Source of the DNA: Haliotis cracherodii
Lineage: Eukaryota
NCBI RefSeq assembly: GCF_022045235.1
Contig: NW_027266271.1
Span: 30,752,001 to 30,816,000, forward strand
Direction of reading: 5' to 3'
Length of the DNA: 64,000 bases
Under the pieces are notes generated by a model, which was not told where the DNA came from, did not search any database, and saw only the letters and a program-made list of their open reading frames with translations. Shown here piece after piece: positions 1 to 61,000 of the stretch. Position 1 is the stretch's first letter. Each line of letters starts with the position of its first letter. The translations under genes and the position numbers were made by a program.

Positions 1-2799
1 CCATCTGACTCAGTAGCTCCTCCTCTTTTACCGCTGGACCAATGAAACCTGTACCTGATGCAAGAGGTTTAAATCAGATTTTCAATATGGCTGCAATGGC
101 AGCCATATTGCAAAATAACATCAATGGACAAGTTGTACATTTGTTTCTTGTATGTGTTAGTCTGGGAACATCTGAAGAAGCTGAAATATCATAGCATATT
201 ATTTGAAACTTTTGTGATTTTTATGAGTTTTTCTTTTTTACAAACTTTTAATTAATCAAATCAAATTAATCAAATATAATCATCTTCACATAACCTACAG
301 GAGTCGAGTCATCAAGGGGATACTTTGAATCAATGAAAATGGCTATAAATAGATTCTCAGCATGATGATGAGGCTGGGAGTGGCATCAATCTGTGGTTAG
401 TACCCGGTATATGCTACGTCTTTCGGTGGACGCTTAGGAGCTTGGGACAATTCAGGAAAACCTTCTCATACTTTATTCGGATGTTTTTAACCCTGATAAG
501 TTTTTTTGTTCATGATAGGCATCAGTATTGAAAATTTAACTTTTGTGAATTGGTTTGTTTTAATCTTCCCAGAATTGTGTGAAGGATGCCTTGTTGTGTT
601 ACACCAATCAGACATTGTAACACCTTGCATTTATTGTATCATGTTATGAAATTTAGTTACTTAATTATCTTGGTCCATTTGTCCTGACTATTCATACCAA
701 AAATATTGAAATATTATGCCAGCTTTGATCATTGGATGTATTCAGAGTGACGGCCCTTGTCAGTCAGTTGAGTACCACCAGCTATCACTGTCCTGGCAAG
801 GGGCGGAACTGGTACTCAACCATGTGTTACAAAAACAAATATGCTAATGTTTATTGAAGAATTAATGTTTATTCAGGGGACAACTTGGGAAAGGGGTGAT
901 CTGAAATATTGGTTCATAAATGTTAGAGAAAATGTTGATATTGACCATTATTGACAGCCCAGAATATGATTGAAATAGATGACAGTTGTTCCTCAATCAT
1001 GACAGAATTGAAAGGTTTCTAAACAGTAAGTCGAATCAATCCATCGTGACGGTTTGTGCATTTTCCCTTGATCCTCCATTTTGTTGAAGAATGCAAACTT
1101 AAGTCGCTGTGCATATTGGCATCTTAATGTTTATATGAACGCAGTGCATACCAGTGCTTCACACTAAGTCTAAAGACATCTAGTAGGTATCTCATGATAA
1201 AGTCATGTTAAAGGGAAAGACACTATATCATATTTGGAAACAGTGGACTTTGGAATCTCGCAGTTTCTCTCTGTATATGGTTACTGGTTTAATCCTGTGA
1301 CTGTCTCTGTAGATATTTGAACATGCCTACAATATATGACTAGGTGAGCTACAGTGCCATGACACAATGTTTTGTAGGGATGGTCTAATATGAGATCTCC
1401 ATGGGAATGTTTTCTTTCTATTGTTAATGATGTCGCAGGAATGCTAATCAAACTTTCTTTTTTCAGCGAAATGAAATTATTAACAAATGACAGCTGCTCT
1501 CTCTCCCTGGTGGCTGCTGCCGAGAAAGACAAAAATGTCAGCCGACTGAATTCACTTTATGTTTAGTAAAGTTAGTAAATTGTTCGAATGTGAAACAAAA
1601 TTGATTAAAAGTTCTTCCGAATCCTTCAATTTAATAAGTGTTCCCTGACAGTGAGATGAGCCTGTCTTGTGTCAGGTGTCTGTTTCCACCAATGAGAGAG
1701 CAGGAGTGATTCTATTGGTAAAGTGTTTGATCCTATACGGCCAATGGCTGCACCCGCTGTAATTACTAGTGCTAGATCCGGACTACCAATTCCATGACAA
1801 CCTGGTTTCAAGGTGACACTGATACAGGGACATTTCAAACTCAGTCTATGATTCTTTAATTTACTTGTAGCTCAACTAAACGAGTGGTTGTGAGAGTTTA
1901 CTCAGTGATGTGTTTGTTCATCATCCGTATCATAAATATCGGAAGTTTAAAGTCTTCAACAACTTTCCATTCAAATTAACTCCCAAGATATTGAAATTCA
2001 CCCTGATGACATTTCTCTAATTTGAGTTTCCTTCCACATTCTAACCCCTGGGAATCGACATACCCCAGTGTTATAATGCAATAAGCATTTAAGTTGATGT
2101 AGCCAGACCACATGAAGCTATAGAACTCCGTCACTCCTTTTTTTTGGAATGTGTTTTGAAACAGAAATTTTTGAATTAAATAGTTTGTAGAATGTTGTCA
2201 AGGAATATGTCTGGTTGCTATGGCGGGTGCCAGCTAGGTGCATCCATGAAGTTTCTGTACTAATGGCGTCATCCTGTGTCGTATCCCAGGCGTGAAACTT
2301 AAGGGCGGGAAACATGCACGAGGTTGGTATCTATACCATCTTACCATTTCCCATCATTCTTTGCGGTAGCGGGTTGGGCGTAAAAATGGGTGCTTTGCAA
2401 GTAATGATCACACAGGAGAGTGGGTTGTTTCTGGCACGGACATTTAATAAATATTGAAATGTGTTGTACATTTTCAAACAAATTTTAAAACTCTTTTAAC
2501 AGTGAAACCACTCAAAATTGAATCTGTTATCAAGAAACTAGTACTGTATCTTGCAATATGGAACTAGTTTCTGGTGAGCAGTTTTGATATTGCAACACAC
2601 CCAACCAGCTTTGCTTCTTGGCTCCTGGTCATGTGATGACTGCTCTGCTGATGCTGCTAGTTCACCGCTTGTCTCATCCTGTGTGTCCAACATGCCATAC
2701 ACCATCACCATCATCATAACACCCATGGCGCCATTGTAGACTCATACACTCCATAGGAGAATGGACATCTAGCTCATGTGGGAGAATTATGGTTATATG

Positions 2800-10000: not shown

Positions 10001-13000
10001 TCGTTATCTGAGTTGACTGTATGTGCAGTGTGTAGTATAAACTTGTTATCCAAAAGAATTTTGACCGTTTTTTTCATTTCATCGTTTCAGTTGTCATACA
10101 ATCATACCAAGGCAGACAATGAGCTTCAGTGTGCGGACCTACACGACAGCTCGAAACAGTGGACGATAGACACCCACTTCAAACTTACATGTGAGTCTCA
10201 TCACTAGGCAGGATTTACACATGGTCATGTTCCAGAGAGTGGGCATGTATGCCTCATAATGTTGTTAGTGTTTTTCCCCAACTGGGATCATAGATGGACT
10301 ATCAACCCCTGGGGATTATTGTTATCTGTCAAGATCCGGGGTAGAATAGGTCTTCAGCAACCCATGCTTGCCCTGAAGATCCGGGCCTAGAATAGGTCTT
10401 CAGCAACCCATGCTTGCCGTGAAGATCCAGGGTAGAATAGGTCTTCAGCAACCCATGCTTGCCGTGAAGATCCGGGGTAGAATAGGTCTTCAGCAACCCA
10501 TGCTTGCCATCAAGATCCGGGGTAGAATAGGTCTTCAGCAACCCATGCTTGCTATAAAAGGCGACTATGCTCATTGAAAGAGGCGACTGAAGGGATCGGG
10601 TGGTCCGACTTGCTGAATTGGTTGATGCATGTCATCATATCCCAATTGCATGGATTGATGCTCATGATGTCAATCACTGGATTGTTTGATCAAGACTCAA
10701 TTATTTACAGACTGCCGTCATTTAGCCAGATTATTGTTGAGTGCGGCGTTAAACAACAAACAAACAAACAAACAAACAAAAGGGATGACTAGATTGTATC
10801 TGGTCGTCAGACTCTGTGATTTAGAACATTCTTGTCATCTTACTCCGATGGTGTTAAGTTGCTCATGATATCAACCACTTGTTTATCTGATCTAGGCTTG
10901 ATAATATCAGGCTGCAGTGATATAGGTGGAATATTGCGGCCTGCATATATAGGGAATTTGTTGGTCACAATGGCTGCAGTGTTTCACCCAAGGCTCTGTT
11001 CACCTTTCTCGTGGCCTCACGATTCACAGCTCTGGTCTGTGGACTCCATGCTCAAATATTACTGACAGTTATATGCTTATCAATGAAGCCTGTTACATGT
11101 GTAGGTTTACAAGTTGTTTTTATTGTGGACTTTCTTTTCAGCTGTGAATCAAATTGCCAAAGACTGGATGTCTGGAAACTGGTATTTTGCTGACGACAAA
11201 CGAGATCAGATCTTTCTGTGCACAGCTACTGGCGAACATTGTCTGACAGTGCTCAACTATGGAATAAGCCAGCCTAAGAGCATTGCCATCGATGCATCCA
11301 GAGGGTAAGCCATGTACATGTTACGTTCACTATCATCACAAGTATTGCTAACGATGTATCCAGAGGGTATGTTATGTACAAGCTACGTTCACTATCATCA
11401 TGAGTATTGCCATCAGTGCATCCAGAGGCTGTATGTGATATTTATTTATTGACTTCAATGTTATTGATGGACGTCCTAGATGCTCTGAGTAAATGATGTA
11501 GATGACGACACTGATTAACTTTGTGTTTCAGGTATATATTCTACGCAGATTGGTCATCACAGTCCAAGATCGGGAGAGCAAATCTCGACGGTTCTGAAGC
11601 TCATGGCATTGTGACGCGGAAGATCGTCCACCCCAGCGGCATCACCCTGGACTACGCCAACAGACACGTGTACTGGGGAGACACCTTCCTCAACCTCGTT
11701 GAGCGAGCAGACTACGACGGCAACAACAGGAGAACCGTGTCCCCAGGGACAAATGTAAGTGTTGAGTTGATGGTAGCCTGTACAAAGTTTGGGCGTCCAG
11801 ATCAAGCCCTGTATCCATAGTGTCACTGCTGGAGGATTGTGGGAATTGATGCTCACACTCGATCACTCTGTGACTGTTTTCTTTTTCTTTTGGCCCCGTA
11901 ACATATTGACCAAGGTACTGACTTCTCTCACTCGCTGTATCTAACTGGAGATTTTACCCATGTTCCTGGGCCCTCTTCTACAAAGTGATTCTTTTTTATT
12001 CCTCCGGCATACAACATAATTGTGTCTACTTTGTCATCCATCAACTTCTAAGTAATGCCTTTCAAAGAAATTCAAGTCATTTTTAGTAGAACTTTGAGGA
12101 CTGTTTATTACCTTACTTCCAGATTAAGCCGCGGTATGGGCTAACACTTTTTGAAAATGCCCTATATGTGTCTAACCTGCAAAAGCGCAACCACAGCGTC
12201 GTACAGCTGCACCGCTACGACCGCACTATCCCGCCGCAAGTGATCAAGAAGGACGTGATCAAGCCTGGCGCCCTGCAGGTGGTACACTCAGTGAGACAGC
12301 CAGGCCACAGTAAGTTTGTGTGCAGGGCATAGTTGCAGATTGGGGAGATTATCCATGTGTTATTCAGAGATTGTTCCACAACGTGTGCTATTCAGGTTTT
12401 GTAGCTTGATTGTCAGTGGAGTTTTTCTGTTGAACTGGTTGAATTTGGATTCTTGACAATTGACATATTTTGTCAGTTTTCAGCTTTTTTGTTGTTAAAC
12501 TTCCATGAAGAAGAGAAGAGATTGCTATTTGGAGTTTTTTAATATGCATTTTCTTGTCTTGGATAAGGTATCAGTTTGTGAAAGTATTTTCTAGTGGATG
12601 ATATAACTGAATAATGTGTGCACATATCCAACAACAAACTCGAATCTCTGCCTTTTTTCCACAGAAAATGTTCAGATTCATAAGAATAAGTGCAGCCAGA
12701 TCTGCATCCCGATGCCGCTCGTGAGTGGCGGAGTTCAAGCTACATGTGCCTGCCGGGCGGGCTTCCGACTGCACAACGGAACCCAGTGTGAAAGTGAGTA
12801 CACATTTAACGGAACCCAGTGTGAAAGTGAGTACACATTTAACAGAACCCAGTGTGAAAGTGAGTACACATTTAACGGAACCCAGTGTGAAAGTGAGTAC
12901 ACATTTAACGGAACCCAGTGTGAAAGTGAGTACACATTTAACGGAACCCAGTGTGAAAGTGAGTACACATTTAACGGAACCCAGTGTGAAAGTGAGTACA

Positions 13001-16000
13001 CATTTAACAGAACCCAGTGTGACCAGTGTGAAAGTGAGAACACATTTAACGGAACCCAGTGTGAAAGTGAGTACACATTTAACGGAACCCAGTGTGAAAG
13101 TGAGTACACATTTAACGGAACCCAGTGTGAAAGTGAGAACACGTTTAACGGAACCCAGTGTGAAAGTGAGTACACATTTATGTTAACGGAAGGGTGTAGA
13201 ATCTATAAACATTAAAAAGTTGAAACAAACTACTTTCTTTGGATTGCTTTTCCATTTTTGATATCCAAATATATGTTGCTTGGAAAGACATGTTGGAATG
13301 TGCTCATGATGTACAGCAGACAGTTGTTAGACGACATTACAGCTTCCCTAGCAGTCTGCTGACTCTTAGACGTGACAGACGTGTCAGACTTTGTCACTGA
13401 ATCTTGCAAGGAAAACTACTTTTTAGGTTGGTAATTCCTTTGAAGACATAACCTATTACGTCATAGACATCAATCCTATATTTCGGCTGTCCTAACACTG
13501 AAACATCTTAAGATTTTCAACAGACGCTCCTTGATTGCTAGCTCTCTAATAGCCTTGAGGAAGATAGTATTCTCAAGCCAACAGCATCTACGCATACATG
13601 AGGCAGGAAAACATCACTTTCTTATCTGTGCTAAAGTAAACAGGGATAGTCTTTACCCAGCTCACAGTTGGTTTGATCTTCACACTGTAATTTTTCATAA
13701 GGTTTTCACAGTTAATTCATTATAATTACTAGTAGTGCACTAGTAATCACCCCTCCATCGACTCCCGTACTGACCATGATGAACAAACTGTGGCTGTACT
13801 GAATTGCACCAGTGTTGTGGTTGTTTCTCACACTGTCGACCACGAGATTGTCTGGTCCAGCCATCACTTAACAGCTGTAGTCACAACTGTGTATAACTAA
13901 ATTATTGCATGATACCATGGTTACAGAGAAAATACCGGACAGGTTCCTGCTATACGCCAGCGCCCAGCAAGGAAGTGTACACGGCATTTCATTGGACCCA
14001 AGCATTGCGCACGACGTGATGGTACCCATCCAGAACCTCAACCGACCAATCGCATTGGCTCCCCATTCCTCGACGGGCATTGTGTACTTCTCCGATGTCA
14101 GCAAGATGCAAATACGGCGGCGGAATGTGGACAGTGAAGAAGAATCTGAACTTTTCCTGGATTCAGGTAAGTAACTGTGTTTGTCTCAATAATGTACCAA
14201 CTGTGCAGGGTTAGTAAAGACTGGAGCCAAGGATTATGGCAACTTAGTATCATTGCGATGGTAACTGTGGTGTTTGGTCATAATGGAGCCAAGACTTGTG
14301 GTGCTTAGCAACATTCCTGTTGCCATGGTAACTGTGGTGATTGGTCATAATGGAACCAAGACTTGTGGTGCTTAGCAACATTCCTGTTGCCATGGTTACT
14401 GTGGTGATTGGTCATAATGGAGCCAAGACTTGTGGTGCTTAGCAGCATTCCTGTTGCTATGGTTACTGTGGTGTTTGGTCATAATGGAGCCAAGCTCTAC
14501 AAATCTGTTTCCGTGCCCTGTGTTCCAGGAGTGACTCGGTGTGAGGGTCTGGCCATCGACTGGGTGGGCAGCAACCTGTACTGGACTGATGACGGCCACC
14601 AGTCAATCAACGTCGTCAGGCTCGACAACACCTCCATGGTCTACACCGTCGTCAACGGCACCAACCATCCACGGTCAATGGTCGTAGATCCAAATGAAGG
14701 GTAAGCATGAGTTATTTTACATCCTACATATGTGCTGTTGTCAATTCTGTCACTTCCAATGTAAAAGAGTTCAGCTGTTACCATTTGGAGGGATTATTTC
14801 TTTGTAAAATTACTTTGATTAGCTGACAAATGTAATCTGATCTTATTCCTTCCTAATTTTAATGTCACCTAACGGCATTTTCATTATTGGAGATCTACAT
14901 TATGTTACTATTTCATATTGTAGTATGAATATACTACTCAAAACAAGTTAAAGAACACCCAGCCCATGGAGATCTGGGGTAGAATAGGTCTTCAGCAACC
15001 CATGCTTGCCCTAACAGGCGACTATGCTTGTCGTAAGATGCTTTTAACAGGATCGGCTGGTCAGGCTCGCTGACTTGGTTGAAGCATGTCATCGTATCCC
15101 AATTGTGAGGATCGATGCTCATGATGTCAGTCACTGGATTGTCTTGTCCAGACTAGATTATTTACAGACCACCGTCATATAGCTGGAACATTGCTGAGTG
15201 CGGTTGTTAAACAACAAACAAACCATAAAGAACACCCAGAGTTGGAGACTATGTGTTGCAATATCCACCCTCCATAGCTATAGCCATTTGAAAGAAATTG
15301 GGAGTTTTGAGTATGTCTCTCATGTTATTATGACATAATGGAGACAAAACCTGACTGCTTCGTAACATACCTATTGCCATGGTTACTGTCCGGTGCTACT
15401 TTTGGCTGACTGACTCTAGATTATTGACATGTCACTGTGATCTGGCTGGAATGTTGCTGATTGCAGCGTAAACCTGCCAGCAAACATATTATTGATGTGA
15501 ATGTCATTATGTTTCTAACTTTCTAATGAATGTGACCTTCATCCTTGCAGCATGATGTACTGGATTGACCTCCTGTGGAGACACCCTGGCGACATTGTAG
15601 CTAAGATCGAACAGGCTGCGCTGGATGGCAGTGGCCGGAGAGACCTAGTTAACCAGACCATCAAGTGGCCGAACAGCCTCACTCTGGATACAGCCAATCA
15701 CAGGCTGTACTGGACCGACGCTTACTACGACAAGATCGAAAGTATCTTGACTAATGGGTCGGACAGACGGGTATGCATTATCACATTGTTATCATGTGTG
15801 GAACAATTCTGCTGTTGATGGAGTTCATGAGTCAGTGTATCCTAGAAGACTTTCACATATACTACTCCTAGGAAGTTAAAGAAAGCCCAATTCTTTCATA
15901 TGACCATAGTTAATCTGTAATGTCTTCCAATTGTGGGTGTTCTTTGACTTGTTTTGAGTGGTATGGTTAGTAATAGTTTTGGTAAGGTTTTATTTCGGTG

Positions 16001-34000: not shown

Positions 34001-37000
34001 GGGGAGGGTTGGATGCCATTGTCGGGGGTCGGGGTATGGGTGGGTGCCACTGTTTGGGGGCGGGTGGGTGCCAGTGTATGCGGTGGGGGAGGGTTGGATG
34101 CCATTGTCGGGGGTCGGGGTATGGGTGGGTGCCAGGATCAGGGATCGGGGAAGGGTGGGTGCCACGTTTAGCGAAGGGGGAGAGCTGGATGCCACTGTCT
34201 GGGGTCAGGAGATGGATGGGGCCAGGATTAGGAGTCAGGTGATGGGTGAGTGCCAGGGTTAGGGATCAGGAAGGGGTGGGAGCCAGGGTTTGGGGTCAGG
34301 AGAGGGATGGGTGGGTCAGTGGCAGGCTTAGGGGTCGCGGGATGGATGATTGCAAGGCTTAGGGGTCACGCGATGGATGATTGCAAGGCTTAGGGGTCGG
34401 GGGATGGGTTTGGCCTGAGTTAGGGGTCAGGAGAGGGATGGGTCGGGGGATGGATGATTGCAAGGCTTAGGGGTCGGGGGATGGTTTTGGCCTGAGTTAG
34501 GGGTCAGGAGTGGGGTAGATGAATGTGGGGTCAGGGCTTAGTAGGCAGCTTTACATCTGGAAATGGGATGGGATTTGGGATTGCCTTGGGATAGAGGATG
34601 TGCACTGGGGAGGATGTTGGGGGTTAAGATACACAGGTGTATACAGCTTTGGAGGCAGGTGGCATTTGGGTTGTCATGACTGGGTTGCAGTTGTAACTGC
34701 AGTTTAATGTGATATGCTTTTATATTCAGGATACATTTCCTCTTTCTGTCTGTTCTGATGTAGGCCAACAAATTCAATGGTTCTGACGTCCTGACGATTC
34801 AGAGAACGTTTACCCAACCATTTGACCTGCAAGTCTTCCACCCTAAGAGACAGCCACCAGGTGAGTGTCTCACTCTCTCAGCTTATAAAACAAATCTATT
34901 CCCGTCATGCCACACTTTTCACATTAACACTTGAAGTGTTTTACCAGTTTTTTCTAACATATTAATTGCAGTACCTTGTTGATGTGCTTGTCACAGAATA
35001 CTTTTGTCTTCTTTACAGCATTGACCATGGCCAGAGACTAAATGAAATACATGTCATCAATTATTTAGTAAAAAAACAACCGATACTATTTTGTTGACTT
35101 TGATGGTTGTATCATTTGGTTTTTTTCGATGGTGTGATTTGGCTTTGATCAGTGGAAACATTAAATTAGGAAACCCCTTAAATGTCGCCTCAGTAGACAT
35201 CTAGTTTCTTGACAGCGTGTGCAGTAGTCAGAGATCATCTTCTGACACACTGACTGTTTCAGCCATCAACCCCTGTCGTGAGAACAACGGCGGCTGTTCC
35301 AACTTGTGCCTCATTGGCTTCAACCACACCGCCAACTGCAAGTGTCCCCACCGCATGAAGCTTGAGGCGAACAACAAGACATGTGTTGGTAGGTAGCCCC
35401 ATCACCGTCACGAAATCACCATTTGACATTTTCAAAATCTCAGCAAGGTCAAGGTCATGGTAGGTGACCAATTTTTTTTGGTAAAATGTAAGAAAAGCTG
35501 ACTGGGCAGATTTTTATGTAAGTTTCATGTCATTACACCTTGATGTATTGGTTTGTATGTGTAGGGACTGTTTCCTGGGATATCGTTGAGATATTGCAGC
35601 TCAATCCGTTCATCTTTCCTTACAGCTGACAACAAGTTCCTGTTGTTCGTGAAGGAGAATGAGATCCGTGGTGTTGACCTGAACAACGCCCACTACAACG
35701 TCATCCCCTCCATCACAGTACCCTTTGTGGAGAACGCCACCGCCATTGACTACGACAGCTCCGAGGACAAGCTGTACTGGACGGACAAGAAACGCAACGT
35801 CATCCGCAGTGCTTTCATCAATGGAACTGGAATTGAAACCATCATAGACTCGGGTAAGTCGTCACTCTGAACAAGACTCGGATAAGTCGTCACCCTGAAC
35901 AAGACTCGGGTAAGTCCTAGCAAAGGTTAAACAGACATCTTAAAATGGGTCAGGTAATGTTGAAGGTGGAGTTAACACTGTGGGTCCCACCTCTCTATTG
36001 CTGGTTGTGTGGGTGACTAAATTGGATCAGATGGCCAGGCAAGGTGACTTGACTGTGTTCACCAACAATATTAATGTGGAATGGTGCTCATGATATTAAT
36101 CACTGGTGCGTCTGGCCCAGATTTGATTATTTACAGTCCGCTTTGTTATGGCTAGGATATTGTTGGCTGTGGCATTAAACAGGCAACATGTGATTTGTTT
36201 GTTTAACACCACACTCAGCTATATTCCAGCTGCTAGCATATGACAGCTATCTGTAAATAATCCAAGTCGGGAGACAGACCAGACAATCCAGTGATTGATA
36301 TCATGAGCATTGATCACACAATTTGGATACTATGACATCCGCAAGCCAGCAAGCCTGACACTCAATCCAATTAGTCGCCTCGTTTGACAAGCATGGGTTT
36401 CTGAAGACAGACACGTGAAGGCTGATTTCCATAAGTGTCCATCCAGTGTCCAGTCTGGGTGTGAACTGTTTCACTGCTGTGCTTCATGATTCCGCCCATC
36501 ATCATCCCTGAATGACAAGAACCAGATTAATTAAATCTCAAGTATTAATAAGAAAGTCATGGAGTCATTTTGAGCCATGGATCTTCCTGCTACCCCTGCT
36601 GATTGGCTGAACCTTTACGCTTCGATCTGTTTCAGGAATATCCAACCCTGAGGGGTTTGCGATTGACTGGTTGTCCAAGAACATGTACTTTTCTTCCTAC
36701 AATGACCAGAAAGCTTCCATATCGGTGGCCAAACTGGACGGCGCCTACCGGATCGAGATTGTCAGCACTGTAGCAACAGCCAACGCCAACCTGCTGAGAC
36801 CCAACTCCATTGCTGTCCACCCCAAGAAAGGGTCAGTTACTATGGAGGCTTTGTCCTGGGTGGGGTGGTGGTATACCCTGTGTCACAGAAGTAGGGAGGT
36901 GGGGACCGGGCTGACATTACGGATTGGTAGGGGGGAGATGGTTTGTAGAGGTGGGGGTAGTGGGGAGGACATTACGGATTGGTAAATGCGGGTATGGCAT

Positions 37001-40000
37001 AACCTGAAAGGGTGAGGAATAATATCATGGATTGGTAGGGTTCAGGGACAGGAGACGACATGATGGGTAGGCGTCGGGATTGGTATGGAGGAGTCTACAT
37101 TACAGATTGGTATGGAGGGGTCTACATTACAGATTGGTATGGAGGGGTCTACATTACAGATTGGTATGGAGGGGTCTACATTACAGATTGGTATGGAGGG
37201 TCTACATTACAGATTGGTATGGAGGGGTCTACATTACAGATTGGTATGGAGGGGTCTACATTACAGATTGGTATGGAGGGGTCTACATTACAGATTGGTA
37301 TGGAGGGGTCTACATTACAGATTGGTATGGAGGGGTCTACATTACAGATTGGTATGGAGGGGTCTACATTACAGATTGGTATGGAGGGGTCTACATTACA
37401 GATTGGTATGGAGGGGTCTACATTACAGATTGGTATGGAGGGGTCTACATTACAGATTGGTATGGAGGGGTCTACATTACAGATTGGTATGGAGGGGTCT
37501 ACATTACAGATTGGTATGGAAGGGTCTACATTACAGATTGGTATTGTGACAGCAGCCTTGTGCTGCTGGTTCTGTAACAACTGTCACTGTTGCTGCTCCA
37601 GATTGTTGTTCTGGTCTGACCTGGGAGGGGACAAGCACCGCATCCTGAAGGCCAACATGGATGGAAGCAACGCTCAAGTCATCATCGAGGACGCCAAACA
37701 TCCGACAAGTGAGAAGCATTTAATTAAAATTAAAATTAAAATTACGCATTTATATAGCGCTACCTATCCAGACATACTGCCTGCTCAAGAGCGCTCAGTC
37801 GTATGCTCTTTTGAAGAGGATGGTCTTGAGTTTTGATCTCAAGGTGTTGACATCTTCAGATCCCCTCACATCAATGGGCAGTGCATTCCATAGAGTTGCC
37901 TCTTTTTTGGGGAAGGTTCTGTCGCCATATGTTGTTCTGCTGGTTGGTGGAACAGCAAGCTGTAGTTTGTTTGCAGATCTCAGTGTTCGGCCAGGTTGGT
38001 AAAGGGCAGTGAGTTCCTGGAGGAATACTGGGGATAGCCCATGGATCGATTTGTAGACAAACATGATCAGCTTGAACACTATCCTGAGTCTCACAGGTAG
38101 CCAGTGCAGCTCTTTCAGGACAGGTGTAATGTGTTCACGCATTGACTTCCGTGTGATGAGTCTGGCAGCAGTGTTTTGCACACGCTGTAGTCTATCCAGA
38201 TGCTGCTGCTGGATACCATACAGAAGACTATTACAATAGTCAAGTCTTGATGTTACAAATGCATGGACAAGGCACTTGACTGATGCTGTGTCTACATATC
38301 TTGCTATCTGTCTGATGTTCCTGATGTGAAAGTAAGCTGTCTTGCACACACTGCTTACATGGTTATCCAGACTGAGTGTTGAGTCAATGATCCCGCCTAG
38401 ATTTCGGGCACAAGAGTTTTGCTCAACCGTACAGCCTAAGTGCAATAATCTTGGACGCGACGTTGAACCTCATTTCACTACCTGGTAGTGTGTTTGTTTA
38501 TACATTGATAAATATTCTCTCAGGAATGTGCAGTGTGAGGTCCTCACAAACACTGATTGGTCAGTTGGCTTCAGTCTGATAGACAGTCTCCGCCTCGTCA
38601 GTGCTCATTAGTAACACTGTCATGGAAGGTCACTCATTGGGAGATGTGATATGAGTAGTGATAGTACTGGTGACATTCAGTCGTTGTTACTTAGACATCA
38701 AACTAAGATTAGTATTCCAAGAGGTAGAGATATATTGCTTAACGCTCCCCCCACTATTGCAGGTTTAATGCTCCCCAACTGTTGCAGGCTTAATGCTCCC
38801 CCCACTGTTGCAGGTTTAATGCTCCCCCCACTGTTGCAGGCTTAATGCTCCCCCCACTGTTGCAGGTTTAATGCTCCCCCCACTGTTGCAGGCTTAATGC
38901 TCCCCCCACTGTTGCAGGCTTAATGCTCCCCCCACTGTTGCAGGTTTAATGCTCCCCCCACTGTTGCAGGTTTAATGCTCCCCCCCCACTGTTGCAGGCT
39001 TAATGCTCCCCCCACTGTTGCAGGCTTCATGCTCCCCCCACTGTTGCAGGCTTAATGCTCCCCCCACTGTTGCAGGCTTAATGCTCCCCCCACTGTTGCA
39101 GGCTTAATGCTCCCCCCACTGTTGCAGGCTTAATACTCCCCCCCCCACTGTTGCAGGTTTAATGCTCCCCCCACTGTTGCAGGCTTAATGCTCCCCCCAC
39201 TGTTGCAGGTTTAATGCTCCCCCCACTGTTGCAGGTTTAATGCTCCCCCCACTGTTGCAGGCTTAATGCTCCCCCCACTGTTGCAGGCTTAATACTCCCC
39301 CCCCCCACTGTTGCAGGTTTAATGCTCCCCCCACTGTTGCAGGCTTAATGCTCCCCCCACTGTTGCAGGTTTAATGCTCCCCCCACTGTTGCAGGCTTAA
39401 TGCTCCCCCCACTGTTGCAGGTTTAATGCTCCCCCCACTGTTGCAGGCTTAATGCTCCCCCCACTGTTGCAGGCTTAATACTCCCCCCCCCCCCCACTGT
39501 TGCAGGCTTAATGTCCCCCCCCCCACTGTTGCAGGCTTAATGCTCCCCCCACTGTTGCAGGCTTAATGCTCCCCCCACTGTTGCAGGCTTAATGTCCCCC
39601 CCCCACTGTTGCAGGTTTAATGCTCCCCCCACTGTTGCAGGCTTAATGCTCCCCCCCACTGTTGCAGGCTTAATGCTCCCCCCACTGTTGCAGGCTTAAT
39701 GCTCCCCCCACTGTTGCAGGTTTAATGCTCCCCCCACTGTTGCAGGTTTAATGCTCCCCCCACTGTTGCAGGTTTAATGCTCCCCCCCACTGTTGCAGGC
39801 TTAATACTCCCCCCACTGTTGCAGGCTTAATGCTCCCCCCACTGTTGCAGGCTTTATGCTCCCCCCACTGTTGCAGGCTTAATGCTCCCCCCACTGTTGC
39901 AGGTTTAATGCTCCCCCCACTGTTGCAGGCTTAATGCTCCCCCCACTGTTGCAGGTTTAATGCTCCCCCCACTGTTGCAGGCTTAATGCTCCCCCCCACT

Positions 40001-43000
40001 GTTGCAGGCTTAATGCTCCCCCCACTGTTGCAGGCTTAATGCTCCCCCCACTGTTGCAGGTTTAATGCTCCCCCCTCTGTTGCAGGTTTAATGCTCCCCC
40101 CACTGTTGCAGGCTTAATGCTCCCCCCCACTGTTGCAGGCTTAATGCTCCCCCCACTGTTGCAGGCTTAATACTCCCCCCCACTGTTGCAGGCTTAATGC
40201 TCCCCCCACTGTTGCAGGTTTAATGCTCCCCCCACTGTTGCAGGCTTCATGATCCCCCCACTGTTGCAGGCTTAATGCTCCCCCCACTGTTGCAGGTTTA
40301 ATGCTCCCCCCACTGTTGCAGGTTTAATGCTCCCCCCACTGTTGCAGGCTTAATGCTCCCTTAATGCTCCCCCCACTGTTGCAGGTTTAATGCTCCCCCC
40401 ACTGTTGCAGGCTTAATGCTCCCCCCACTGTTGCAGGTTCAATGCTCCCCCCACTATTGCAGGTTTAATGCTCCCCCACTGTTGCAGGCTTAATGCTCCC
40501 CCCACTGTTGCAGGTTTAATGCTCCCCCCACTGTTGCAGGCTTAATGCTCCCCCCACTGTTGCAGGCTTAATGCTCCCCCCACTGTTGCAGGTTTAATGC
40601 TCCCCCCACTGTTGCAGGCTTAATGCTCCCCCCACTGTTGCAGGTTTAATGTCCCCCCCCACTGTTGCAGGCTTAATGCTCCCCCCATTGTTGCAGGTTT
40701 AATGCTCCCCCCACTGTTGCAGGCTTAATGCTCCCCCCACTGTTGCAGGTTTAATGTCCCCCCCCACTGTTGCAGGCTTAATGCTCCCCCCATTGTTGCA
40801 GGTTTAATGCTCCCCCCACTGTTGCAGGTTTAATGCTCCCCCCATTGTTGCAGGTTTAATGTCCCCCCCCACTGTGGCAGGTTTAATGCTCCCCCCACTG
40901 TTGCAGGCTTAATGCTCCCCCCATTGTTGCAGGGTTAATGCTCCCCCCACTGTTGCAGGCCTAATGCTCCCCCCACTATTGCAGGTTTAATGCTCCCCCC
41001 ACTGTTGCAGGTTTAATGCTCCCCCACTGTTGCAGGCTTAATGCTCCCCCACTGTTGCAGGCTTAATGCTCCCCCCACTGTTGCAGGCTTAATGCTCCCC
41101 CCACTGTTGCAGGCTTAATGCTCCCCCAAATGTTGCAGGCTTAATACTCCCCCCCACTGTTGCAGGCTTAATACTCCCCCCCACTGTTGCAGGCTTAATG
41201 CTCCCCCCATTGTTGCAGGCTTAATGCTCCCCCCACTGTTGCAGGCTTCATGCTCCCCCCACTGTTGCAGGCTTAATGCTCCCCCCACTGTTGTATGTTC
41301 AATGCTCCCCCCACTGTTGCAGGTTTGACGGTGGACATGAATGGCAACAAGCTGTACTGGATCAGCCGGCAGAACCACACCGTCAACATCTGTGAGCTGG
41401 ACGGTTCCAATCTCAGACAGTACACTCGGGATGTCATGGACATCGAGTCTCCGGTTTCCATGACAGTCTACGACAACACCATCTATGTGGCCAACACCAG
41501 CAACATCCTCAAGTTCGACACCAAGAAGAACAAGATGCAGTCTATGAGGGACAACACGCCCCACGTCTATGCCATGCAGGTGTACGACCCCAGCAGTCGC
41601 AAGGATGGTAATAACAAACATGCCTTTCCCTTCGTTAAGGTTTTCTGTATTTTCCAATTTTTCTTACCGTATATGTCCGCGTATAAGCCGAATTTTGAGG
41701 ACCAGAAAAAAGATTCTGTAGAAAGGGGTCGGCTTATCCACGGGATACACTTTCATGATAGTATTTTTCAGATCGTGATCCGTCAGAAACATCGCCTGAA
41801 TGACGGTCCGATAGAATACAACTTTGGAAGTTGCCACGACTAGAGCCATTATTGTTATAAATTATCTATAAAGTTATACACCAATGTTGTCATTATTAAA
41901 AAAAATGTTATGCATGTTACTACTTCCTATAATAAGTTTTCATTTGAATGTTCAAAGTTTATCGTTCTTCATTTAGTTTTTTTAAAAATATTTTTTAAAA
42001 ACATCTTGGGTACAATGTATGAAGCCCATTTCTGCTGTCCCCTGCAATGATATTGCTGGAATATTGCTTAAAGCGGCATAAAAACCAACTCACTACTCAT
42101 TCACTTTAAACACATCATGTTTTTTCAAATTAACTATAGAAGTAAAGGGGCCCTTTTTAGGTTAAGTTTTTGTTGTTCCCTGGGTGAAAAATACTATGAA
42201 AAAACATGAAGCACTCTAGGGCCCCTTTACTTGTAATGTTATGTAATCAATTGATTGCATGTGATTCCATGACATTTGATTGGCTTACCAACTATTACTT
42301 TTGCATTTGTTTCCATATGTTAAAACAGAAAACAGTAGACCATGCCCACTAGCTGACTACTGTTTGGTTGAATATAGGGTGGGAGGGGCATGGGGTGCAT
42401 TATTGCGCTCTACGATATCATTGATTTTGTATTATTGTGAAGTATTTTGTGTGAATGATTTAGTAAGCAGCCTGTGAAATTATTATTGTTGACTTTTTTA
42501 TATGTAATAACTGACTTCAATATATTTCTCTGTCTATGGAGGTATAAATGATTGAACCAGTGTGCTCAATTTGCGTAGACCTGCTACAAGGATTTACATC
42601 AGTTTTAATGTTTTTTCCTCTAAAACGAATATTGAAGTAAGTTTTTAAATAACTCTTGCTCATTCCCCCTTTCTAGAACTGACAGGGTTAACTTCCAGAA
42701 TGTTCTGGTTGTCTGTTGTCATTTTTAAAGGCTGTTTGGCGATGTCGTCCATTGTACAGAAACACTTTCTGGGAAGGGGAGACAATTTGTACACAATTTT
42801 GTAAATTGTTTCCACAGGGAGCAACGGTTGTCATAAGTCCAATGGTGGCTGTGAACAGATGTGCCTGCCGACTGGCGAGACGTCCAAGATCTGCAAGTGT
42901 ACGGCAGGCTTCACTTTGAGCACTTTAGAGAAATGCCAGGGCATCCTGTCCTTCCTGTTGTACTCCACGGAGTCGGAGATCAGGGGCTTCTCATTGGGCG

Positions 43001-58000: not shown

Positions 58001-61000
58001 GAGACTGTTTAAAATGCTGAGTGCTCGAATACCTCTCCACGTCAATGATGTTGCTAGTGTCAGCGTGACTTTGTTCCAGCCTATCTCTGTGATGAGAACC
58101 AGTTCAAGTGTGAGGACGCCACCTGCATCCCCAGCACCTGGCAGTGTGATGGCCACCCAGACTGCCCCGACGAGAGCGACGAGGGTGACCTCTGCAGTCA
58201 GTAGCCGTCTTATTACAACTTGTGTTTACTATTCAATTTCACAACCTTTCTGAGCTTATGAGGGTTTTCAGCATCGCCTGAATTTATTAATTTCAGTTAA
58301 ATGTTATTATTTGTTAAATTTGTGGTAATATCCTTTGAAAATCCTTCAGATACGTGGAACATTGTTGTAACGTGCTTGATGTTAAGGTCACAGGACAGTA
58401 AATTGATTCTGTTTGCTGGGAATATTCACTTCTTTATTCCAGCTTAGTTACCTATATATATGTTGTCAGAAAACCGCACGTGTGATCCCAACAAGTTCCA
58501 GTGTAAAAGTGGTCGGTGCATCCCGCTTACCTGGAAGTGTGATCGTGACACAGACTGTATCGATGGTGCCGACGAGGGGCACACATTTGCTGACTGCCCA
58601 GGTAAATTCAGATCGTACATGTGACTAAATTATAAAACTAAATTGGTCATAATTGTTGAGGAAATCCTAGAAATATTGGAATATTGGAATATTTTCAGAT
58701 ACCACTGTTTGACGTGTGTTCTTGTGTAAATGTCTGTTGCCATGCCCTGACAAAACTGACATGTTTCAGTTCCCCACTGTGTAAATGTCTGTTTCCATCC
58801 CCTGACAAAGCAATCATGTTTCAGTCCCTCACTGCGAGGCGGATGAGTTCTCCTGCTCCAACAAGCGCTGTATTCGCATGGCCTTCTACTGTGACCATGA
58901 CGATGACTGCGGAGACAACTCGGACGAACCTGAATCCTGTGGTGTGTAAACATAACATTTGTTTAAAACTTCCTTGTTGGAACGACTACTGTGCCCTCAT
59001 ACGATGGTGTTATCTGATTGATGCTCTTACGGTCGTAGATTGTCTACTCCTGGGTTAGAGCACGGTTCAAGATGTATTTCTATGCAATGAACAAAAAGGT
59101 TCGGGATCATGTTTATTTTGGGGATATTTTTTTGTAGTGAAGACTGAGCACACAATATCATTAAAATATCTCCAAAACATTTCATGATCCCAAAGGGGGG
59201 CATGGGTGGCCCAGTCGTCTAAGGCGCCGCGATTCGCTGTGCAGAGTTGTGTCCCTTGGGCACGCCAGAAACCTATGATTGTGGGTTTCGAATCCTCGTT
59301 CGCCCCGATTATGTTTCTAGGTTTGACAACACCATACCCGTGCTCGTGGGTTTCACCGAAGTGGTAAACATCTGAGACCTGCATCACTTCAGGCTTTCCT
59401 CCCACATTAAGCTGACATGCCGCGATATAACTGAAATACTGTTAAAAGCGGCGTAAAACCCAACTCACTCACTTACTCATGATCCCAAACCTTGTCTTGT
59501 TCATTATGTATGAGCTATTGCTGACTTTGGTATTTAAATTGACTCCCTTAAATAACAAATTCCATCATAAGATCTGAGGAACGACTGAGCCACATTGTCA
59601 GTGTCGGATACTGATCAAAACAAGGATTAGGTGGGTTTCAACAAAGTTATAAATGTCTTTAGACCTGCATCACTTCTGAATGTCCTCCCATGTCAAGCTG
59701 ACAAGCTGAGCTATAAGTGAAATACTGTTCAAAGCGGTGTTACGCCAAATTTACTAAATAGTCCAGTTCTCGAAGGCACTACTGTGCAGAGTTGGCCATC
59801 CCAGGATCCCTTGGTCATATACCACTGAGACAAGTTAAGGGCTGCCAAATGTTTCTGTACTATAGTTGATCTGTCATGTCAGTGATGTGAAAGAATCTGA
59901 TGGTCCTAAACTTTTCTTGGAGTAGTATAGTTTCTCATCATGTCTTGAATTTGATGATTGGTTTGTCAGCCGACTTGTATGTTTGATCATGTTAGTTCAG
60001 TATCTGCATCACTTAGGCCAGGGTAGAATAGGTCTTCAGCAACCCATGCTTGCTGTAAAAGGCGACTATGCTTGATGTAAGAGGCGACTTACTGGATCGG
60101 ATGGTCAGGCTCGCTGACTTGGTTGATGCATGTCATCTTATCCAAATTGCGTGGATTGATGCTTATGATTGTCTGGTTCTGACTTGAGTATATACAGACC
60201 ACTGTCATGTAGCTGGAATATTGCTGTGTGTGCGGCATTAAACAAACAAACAAAGATTCAACTGACATGATATTAGTGATATACTGATCAAGGCAGCCCT
60301 AAACCTGACTCCCTCACTCACCCCAGCCTGCTCCTCTTCCTCCCCAGCGGACCAGCGCTGTGCCCCCAATGAGTTCCAGTGTGCCAACAAGGGCAAGTGT
60401 ATCCCCGCTGAGGAGCGCTGTGACAACTACTTCGACTGCCCCGATCATTCAGATGAGAAGAACTGCGAGGTATTGCCATGTGGAAACGTGACACAATTCC
60501 AGTGCCAGAACAACGTCTGCATCGACGACGAACTCGTCTGCAACGGTAACAACGACTGCGGGGACATGTCAGATGAACCAGACAACTGTGGTGAGTTATC
60601 AGCGTGATGACAGAATGATTGATTGATGGAAGTCTGCAGAGTATGCAGCCCATTACTTTCTAATTCTCACCCATTAGACTTGAATCTCAAATATTTTTAT
60701 CATGAAAGAAGTTCCATTGTTTTATCATCCATGACTGTCTTCCACAGGAGTTATAGCTGCAATGAAATTGCATCACAATGCTTTGCAGACTATTGTGATA
60801 TCATAGGTTACCATGACATCGCAATCAAACTTGGCACTGAAGCATTCGTGACCAGCTCGTGTTATTCCAGGACAAGCCAAATAGTGACTTGTGCCCCCTT
60901 TTTGCGACTGGGTATCGTCAAAGCACAAATGGGCATAGTTAAACAAATTGTCAACTCATTGCATAATGATTCGCGTATATTTCCCCCATATATCATATAT

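Follow-up and report, generated by a model that had tools for sequence, protein, structure and literature searches.

The 64,000-nucleotide (nt) stretch of the Haliotis cracherodii genome analysed here (contig NW_027266271.1, positions 30,752,001 to 30,816,000; referred to as the window) lies wholly within one plus-strand gene, identified as a Haliotis LRP1-like gene from its colinearity with LRP1 orthologues, proteins with LDL-receptor class A/B and EGF modules. One intron of this gene ends in a minisatellite whose units are near-copies of the intron's own 3' end, each carrying a branch-like TTAAT, a C-rich tract and CAG. As a repeat, the array is certainly beyond chance. Dominant transcripts splice at its last, exon-proximal copy, and regular splicing is kept. 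The array is very probably a splice-junction minisatellite of the type termed "mirage," a tolerated passenger with normal splicing at the last copy. Lancelets and humans are known to carry repeats of this kind; the abalone array adds a large case on the acceptor side, from a phylum new to the type.

The elements of this junction are listed below in window coordinates. P0155 denotes a 4751-amino acid (aa) database protein, TRF stands for Tandem Repeats Finder, and a slash in a splice site marks the junction.

37602 to 37708, plus strand: upstream exon (exact match to P0155, unique GT-AG junction solution)
37709 to 41322, plus strand: intron of 3614 nt, the array forming its last 2586 nt (junction solver, sequence)
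38737 to 41322, plus strand: minisatellite, 98 x 26 nt (TRF, unit parsing)
41271 to 41296, plus strand: unit 97, the decoy nearest to the real acceptor, without AG (sequence, unit parsing)
41271 to 41320, plus strand: AG-free zone of 50 nt, 5' of the real AG (AG scan)
41297 to 41322, plus strand: unit 98, the real 3' splice site …CCCCCCACTGTTGCAG/G (sequence, junction solver; RNA contig pieces start at 41323)
41323 to 41607, plus strand: downstream exon of 285 nt, residues 1813-1907 (exact match to P0155, junction solver, RNA contigs)

The original prediction, which was made from the sequence, had described about 100 tandem copies of a 3' splice site. TRF and unit parsing confirm this and delimit the array at 38737-41322, with 98 units of 26 nt in 2586 nt. 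At period 26, TRF reports 38737-41323 with 98.0 copies, 89% matches and a score of 3103; at period 52, it assigns 92% matches and a score of 4250 to the same array. Exactly 26 nt are found in 75 of the 98 parsed units, the two commonest variants occur 34 and 25 times, and the consensus reads G[C/T]TTAATGCTCCCCCCACTGTTGCAG, with 61 units of the C-type and 37 of the T-type. Within 38737-41326, TTAAT was counted 91 times and TTGCAGG 96 times, while 38737-41322 contains 97 AG dinucleotides, an AG being kept in 96 upstream copies (decoys). The expectation that many units continue as AG/GT holds for 36 decoys, or about three in eight (37 occurrences in the array region including the real site), whereas most units continue as AG/GC (59) and one as AG/GG.

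Only 37 substitutions relative to the consensus are present over the 98 units, and many of these are shared sub-variants. Consensus columns 21-26 (TTGCAG) carry three substitutions over all units, two of them in unit 97. This penultimate unit ends in TTGTAT, as CAG has become TAT through 41294 C>T and 41296 G>T, and these changes (C24>T and G26>T in unit numbering) were seen in no other parsed unit. AG is absent from unit 97 only, among all 98 units. The preceding AG ends at 41270, and a 50-nt stretch devoid of AG (41271-41320) precedes the real AG, so that unit parsing fully reproduces the predicted destruction of the AG in the penultimate copy. Unit 98, which holds the real 3' splice site, begins with GTTCAAT, where 41300 T>C has turned TTTAAT into TTCAAT.

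The identity of the host gene was approached through its exons, with exon peptides and database proteins searched separately and not as a joined-exon model. An exon peptide matches large LDL-receptor-related proteins, and tblastn with two LDL-receptor-related proteins recovered colinear exons across the window. A search with the region of the best match returned gastropod LRP1-like proteins as the named top matches, together with P0155, whose 90%-identity cluster contains isoforms from the same contig and named Haliotis LRP1-like proteins. Fifty-seven exon segments in the window were mapped by exact match to P0155, and all 56 window junctions, as well as all 89 junctions of the whole gene, have one GT-AG solution each that reproduces P0155. 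The end of the upstream exon, initially placed at 37709, was corrected to 37708 by this junction solver. The upstream exon encodes LRP1-like residues 1777-1812, which belong to a YWTD/LDL-receptor class B repeat (Pfam Ldl_recept_b, E 3.5e-4, 21.4 bits at a cut-off of 21); the peptide of the downstream exon gave no Pfam match at E 0.01. The donor of the array intron is CAA/GTGAGA after 37708 (phase 1), its acceptor is ...CCCCCACTGTTGCAG/GTT before 41323, and the split codon A+GT encodes Ser. The downstream exon is followed by the donor ATG/GTAATA. The Bulinus homologue P0001 shows the same P-x-S-L-T-x-D-M at the array junction, and all 13 cluster members, annotated isoforms and orthologues alike, read HPTS/LTVDM with no insertion. 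None of the annotated isoform differences falls on a junction array.

Evidence for the acceptor in use came from the contigs of four runs, two of putative RNA and two of DNA, aligned to 41063-43450, a region that covers the last ten units and two exons. Two related organisms each contributed an RNA contig: one of 8374 nt from run X15 (organism A) aligned in two pieces, 41323-41606 and 42817-43069, and one of 4683 nt from run X18 (organism B) aligned in the same two pieces with seven exon differences. As both contigs jump from 41607 to 42817 with GT..AG ends (cut +1), they represent spliced RNA. At precisely 41323 both depart from the reference, with thousands of further letters off the last ten units. 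The depth of RNA contigs is zero throughout 41063-41302. Since the RNA contigs break at 41323 and show no depth on the end of the array, it can be concluded that the dominant transcript uses the last AG. Together with the 13 colinear proteins, these contigs bear out the claim that one acceptor is singled out among about 97 look-alikes. The DNA run of organism B contains array-like contigs, and a search for junction-bearing short contigs of relatives through the open reading frame (ORF) 41295-41840 yielded no match. Presumably, the last copy is favoured by exon definition, in which a 3' splice site is selected jointly with the body of its exon and the donor downstream.

By sequence score, the decoys equal the real acceptor in strength. 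In an acceptor position-weight matrix derived from the window's other 55 acceptors, the real site scores 10.4 bits and ranks 11 of 56 (gene mean 7.8, standard deviation 3.0); the AGs of the array have a median of 10.3 bits, and only 0.23% of 2592 other intronic AGs score that high. Use of a decoy would be non-productive: for 96 of 96 decoy acceptors an in-frame stop follows within 40 codons, in 69 cases at codon 9, and splicing to the nearest one that is intact (first exon base 41271) would bring in 52 extra nt and a frameshift. The frame claims of the original prediction are thus upheld: 41323 is in frame, every decoy reaches a stop and the nearest intact one shifts the frame. Decoy use would probably give an unstable message through the premature stop. 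The loss of the AG in unit 97 removes the closest competitor and makes the AG-free zone twice as long. It had been proposed that an AG-exclusion zone made this loss necessary, which was not borne out: the AG-free zones of the 56 real window acceptors have a median of 28 nt and measure 24 nt or less in 20 of them. As an intact unit 97 would leave the same 24-nt zone, the loss is not required by an exclusion zone.

The juxtaposition of AG and GT inside an intron is shared with recursive splice sites, and the 36 decoys that read CAG/GT would, in a recursive-splicing ladder, serve as ratchet points at which the intron is removed stepwise. Known recursive introns are very long, whereas the array intron measures only 3.6 kb. 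The donor regenerated in such a ladder, CAA/GTTTAA, scores -4.9 bits (GC form, -11.3 bits), compared with a mean of 7.8, a standard deviation of 2.4 and a minimum of 0.4 bits for the 56 real donors, among which +5 is G in 52 and +3 is T in only two. In addition, 59 units would give AG/GC rather than AG/GT. The array therefore differs from recursive splice sites in its weak regenerated donor, its mostly AG/GC units and its short intron, and the ladder suggested in the original prediction was rejected because the regenerated donor is far weaker than every real donor; we regard it as extremely improbable.

The array is one of many in its gene. When the whole gene was mapped on 164 kb, consisting of the window and ten flanking 10-kb stretches, it spanned 120 kb and contained 74 intronic arrays, which occupy 31.4 of 106.2 kb of intron (about 30%), with a median intron of 637 nt; within the window, arrays make up 14.1 of 64 kb. 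Placement was compared with a null in which arrays fall at random and an exon overlap of up to 25 nt is allowed, the latter being the analyst's choice. A splice junction is spanned by eight of the 74 arrays (7.1 expected, P 0.42), and 12 lie within 5 nt of a junction (8.5 expected, P 0.11). The position of the array relative to its splice site is hence not unusual within the gene, and junction-built arrays are an ordinary by-product of a very high minisatellite birth rate. That they are not depleted suggests that they are tolerated. A special enrichment of arrays at junctions was considered and rejected: in the window alone, 13 of 39 arrays come within 20 nt of a junction compared with 6.1 expected (P 0.002), an about two-fold excess, but the spanning class of the whole gene is at expectation, with a modest excess confined to the 20-nt class.

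Of the seven further junction arrays of the gene, six are donor-side arrays and one (58723) is an acceptor-side array.

11282-11428, 12775-13180, 35846-35916, 46318-46543 and 58723-58834, in the window: donor- or acceptor-side junction arrays
L013:422-839 and L014:8523-8742, in the flanking stretches: junction arrays

In all eight spanning arrays the annotated site is the exon-proximal copy, i.e., the first donor in six of six and the last acceptor in two of two. Two of the donor arrays have 33-nt units and contain 12 and 13 intact GT copies; in the one at 12775-13180, the first of its 12 intact donor copies is annotated as used.

The strength of the decoys raises the possibility that the array is a functional regulator, either a sink for U2AF, SF1 or a poly(C)-binding protein or a dosage rheostat coupled to nonsense-mediated decay (NMD). 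In its favour, 96 decoys match the real acceptor in strength and all of them lead to a stop, and precedents are described for the variable number tandem repeat (VNTR) of ABCA7, whose length alters the splicing of flanking exons (PMC5954066), and for Gomafu, whose tandem UACUAAC repeats bind SF1 (PMC3116199). However, an RNA contig containing the array is present in neither RNA run, and the array junction is untouched by any annotated isoform. The TTAAT of the unit is not the strong UACUAAC branch consensus, and the array lacks the feature of a sponge RNA, tandem UACUAAC on a stable nuclear RNA, given its TTAAT and the absence of RNA contig depth. Furthermore, junction arrays occur near the random-placement rate in this gene, which argues for a mutational by-product. 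As such arrays are frequent in this gene and arise at chance-level rates, no special function is required; neither form of regulator gained positive support, and we consider a regulatory role improbable.

A separate question is whether the loss of the AG beside the real site reflects selection or decay. If competition with the real site comes from decoys about one unit away or less, selection would disable the nearest while distant copies remain harmless. The AG was lost in one of 97 decoys, and that one is the nearest (1/97 = 0.010); its two substitutions are private and strike the C and the G of CAG, and splicing to unit 97 would lengthen the mRNA by 26 nt, with a frameshift. Similar losses of the nearest decoy were observed at 35846 and 46318 (both GT>AT), in addition to the AG of 38737: in the donor arrays 35846-35916 and 46318-46543, AT replaces GT in the copy beside the real donor, and later copies keep GT. 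When matched decoys were defined as copies with no more than five substitutions from each real 16-mer junction, the nearest decoy was destroyed in three of eight spanning arrays and none of 123 other matched decoys was (Fisher P 1.5e-4; P 1.4e-3 if two diverged far copies are counted), and a weighted positional test gave P 0.0024. However, this test is post hoc, the copies are not independent, and interior copies of big arrays are young. Without the three big arrays, the comparison becomes two of five against two of eight (P 0.51). Far-edge copies (the third of 11282 and the fourth of 92523) have lost their GT too, so that all five destroyed copies, three near and two far, are situated at array edges, as neutral edge decay predicts. 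In mirages, cluster boundaries are described as excluded from homogenization (PMC3087553), and with edge units given about six times the weight, the probability for unit 97 increases to about 0.05. Moreover, the nearest decoy is intact in five of eight arrays, including the acceptor array 58723 and the frame-shifting donor arrays 11282 and 92523. The two readings account for the AG loss about equally well; on balance, we lean slightly towards neutral decay of the array edge, and an adaptive loss is possible. The more specific proposal that abalone junction minisatellites amount to a massively parallel natural contest between splice sites, in which the exon-proximal copy is always taken and selection acts only on the immediately adjacent decoy, leaving a one-unit "buffer zone," appears rather unlikely. 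Whether the nearest decoy is selectively disabled may be the mildly novel point of this array.

As to the origin of the array, the last 26 nt of the LRP1-like intron would have been amplified in place to 98 head-to-tail copies, likely by replication slippage or unequal exchange. The register of the array continues for 4 nt (GTTT) into the downstream exon, whose first four bases are identical to the start of a T-type unit, and this 4-nt microhomology between the unit start and the first bases of the exon may have seeded the amplification. Most likely the product is simply tolerated, as a passenger among the many arrays of these repeat-rich introns. A dispersed repeat or mobile-element origin was rejected, since the unit is confined to the locus: of its 30 matches in the 1.18-Gb genome, 26 fall within the array and none elsewhere reaches at least 80% identity. 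The other four, of 72-77% identity, belong to distinct arrays of 26 and 27 nt on contigs C12 and C7. The arrays in question, L011:1785-2578 (26 nt x 30) and L012:931-2845 (27 nt x 71), show 72-77% identity to the unit over about 100 nt. They are located on other contigs and have the same period and C/G-run core as the unit, a likeness that is probably due to chance convergence of period.

Several points weigh against the reading of a tolerated junction minisatellite with normal splicing at its last copy. The RNA evidence consists of assembled contigs, which drop rare isoforms, and low-level or NMD-masked decoy use could escape; the RNA nature of the X15 and X18 runs is an automatic guess only. 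The join 37708>41323 is one that we infer from the contigs leaving the reference at 41323 and from the annotation, and we likewise only infer an in-situ origin through GTTT microhomology. Across the gene, 20 of 74 arrays are no more than 20 nt away from a junction, compared with 12.3 expected (P 0.006), indicating that placement is not perfectly random. A single assembly underlies both the copy number and the AG-less unit, and the contig of DNA run X6 over the exon halts at 41301, one base past 41300 T>C. This contig end could reflect a graph branch, i.e., the site or the adjoining unit could be polymorphic in that individual.

The dependence on a single assembly also bears on the possibility of an assembly or base-call artefact, which would make the copy number or the AG-less unit spurious. 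The array is too long for short-read contigs to span, and the X6 contig listed ends just past the 41300 variant. On the other hand, words of the array occur in independent DNA runs of two organisms, the X6 bin 41223-41302 is at about single-copy depth with no difference among the rows listed, and three substitutions in 7 nt are atypical of sequencing error. The 98 units with their structured variants (shared sub-variants, C/T alternation) look biological, and an artefact is accordingly judged highly improbable.

Mirages were described in amphioxus as tandem repeats that span exon-intron boundaries, with examples in Adh3, globins, troponin C and PGBD5; according to these reports, both boundary types occur, AG and GT are kept in many copies and splicing is undisturbed (PMC3087553, PMC3902484). 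The abalone array has the mirage features that were tested, namely a minisatellite unit, construction on a boundary and retained splicing. Like the amphioxus examples (Adh3, BflGb6/BflGb9, troponin C and PGBD5), it is boundary-built, keeps its signals and is spliced normally, and cluster boundaries are reported to escape homogenization there (PMC3087553, PMC3902484). It differs in its phylum, Mollusca, and in its unit, which is almost wholly intronic with 1-4 nt of shared exon, whereas a substantial exon part is described for BflGb6. With this minimal exonic share, the abalone array represents the intronic extreme of the mirage family. It also contains 98 copies, compared with the 3-6 given for the amphioxus globin case.

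In humans, intron 7 of F7 contains a VNTR of 37-bp units, the first of which spans the donor, and functional pseudo-sites are reported to remain silent while the first site is chosen (PMC1557585). The two systems share silent copies, which in F7 are identical and functional pseudo-sites, and the choice of the exon-proximal copy (PMC1557585). F7 differs in that its repeat is on the donor side and 5'>3' scanning is described as shown, whereas the mirror case in abalone, the choice of the last acceptor, is seen in contigs only. Intron 18 of human ABCA7 carries a 25-bp VNTR that includes the donor, ranges from 12 to about 427 copies and, according to the report, affects splicing through its length (PMC5954066). 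In both repeats the unit is C-rich, measures about 25 bp and takes in a splice site, and retention of one unit in ABCA7 is reported to cause a frameshift and a premature stop (PMC5954066). Unlike the abalone array, that of ABCA7 is on the donor side, and its length is described as affecting exon 19 skipping and disease risk (PMC5954066). Expanded CAG repeats likewise offer tandem AG acceptors to upstream donors; there, they are reported to be used and to give aberrant RNAs (PMC10614865), whereas no use of the many tandem AG acceptors is seen in the abalone contigs. A mollusc report of such arrays was not found in the open-access literature, to which the search was confined, with subscription papers and supplements outside it.

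Additional observations concern the surroundings of the junction. An array of 17 units of 27 nt at window 37078-37544 ends 57 nt before the acceptor of exon 37602..37708; its units read ...ACAG/ATTGGT, similar to the real junction ...CCAG/ATTGTT, and it may be an older, displaced junction array. In one flanking stretch, an array of 18 units of 31 nt (L018:5603-6172, window-equivalent 79603-80172) ends 4 nt before an acceptor, and its units consist of a T/G-rich tract with no AG, which results in a 570-nt AG-free run before the real CAG. Within the array intron, 5' of the array, the minus strand of 37798-38445 contains a 216-aa ORF that is not in the adjacent register. It gave no Pfam match at E 0.01 and may be a decayed mobile-element remnant. 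An Rfam scan of window 36000-44000 on both strands returned no match. Annotated isoforms differ in an 11-aa micro-exon (residues 126-136, window 2292-2324) and in one residue at position 2750, near window 57312, which adjoins an acceptor and is NAGNAG-like.

The array points to nothing special in the biology of LRP1 itself. Its interest lies in the choice of acceptors, as 96 sequence-equivalent strong 3' splice sites are located 5' of the real one and the dominant mRNA is still correct. The array thus provides a clean natural test bed in which exon definition or proximity can be contrasted with a rule of "first AG after the branch point" or of first come, first served. It also calls for caution in annotation, as gene finders and RNA aligners meet about 100 equally good acceptors here. 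If true genome-wide, a buffer zone of one unit beside the real site would measure the in vivo range over which identical splice sites compete.

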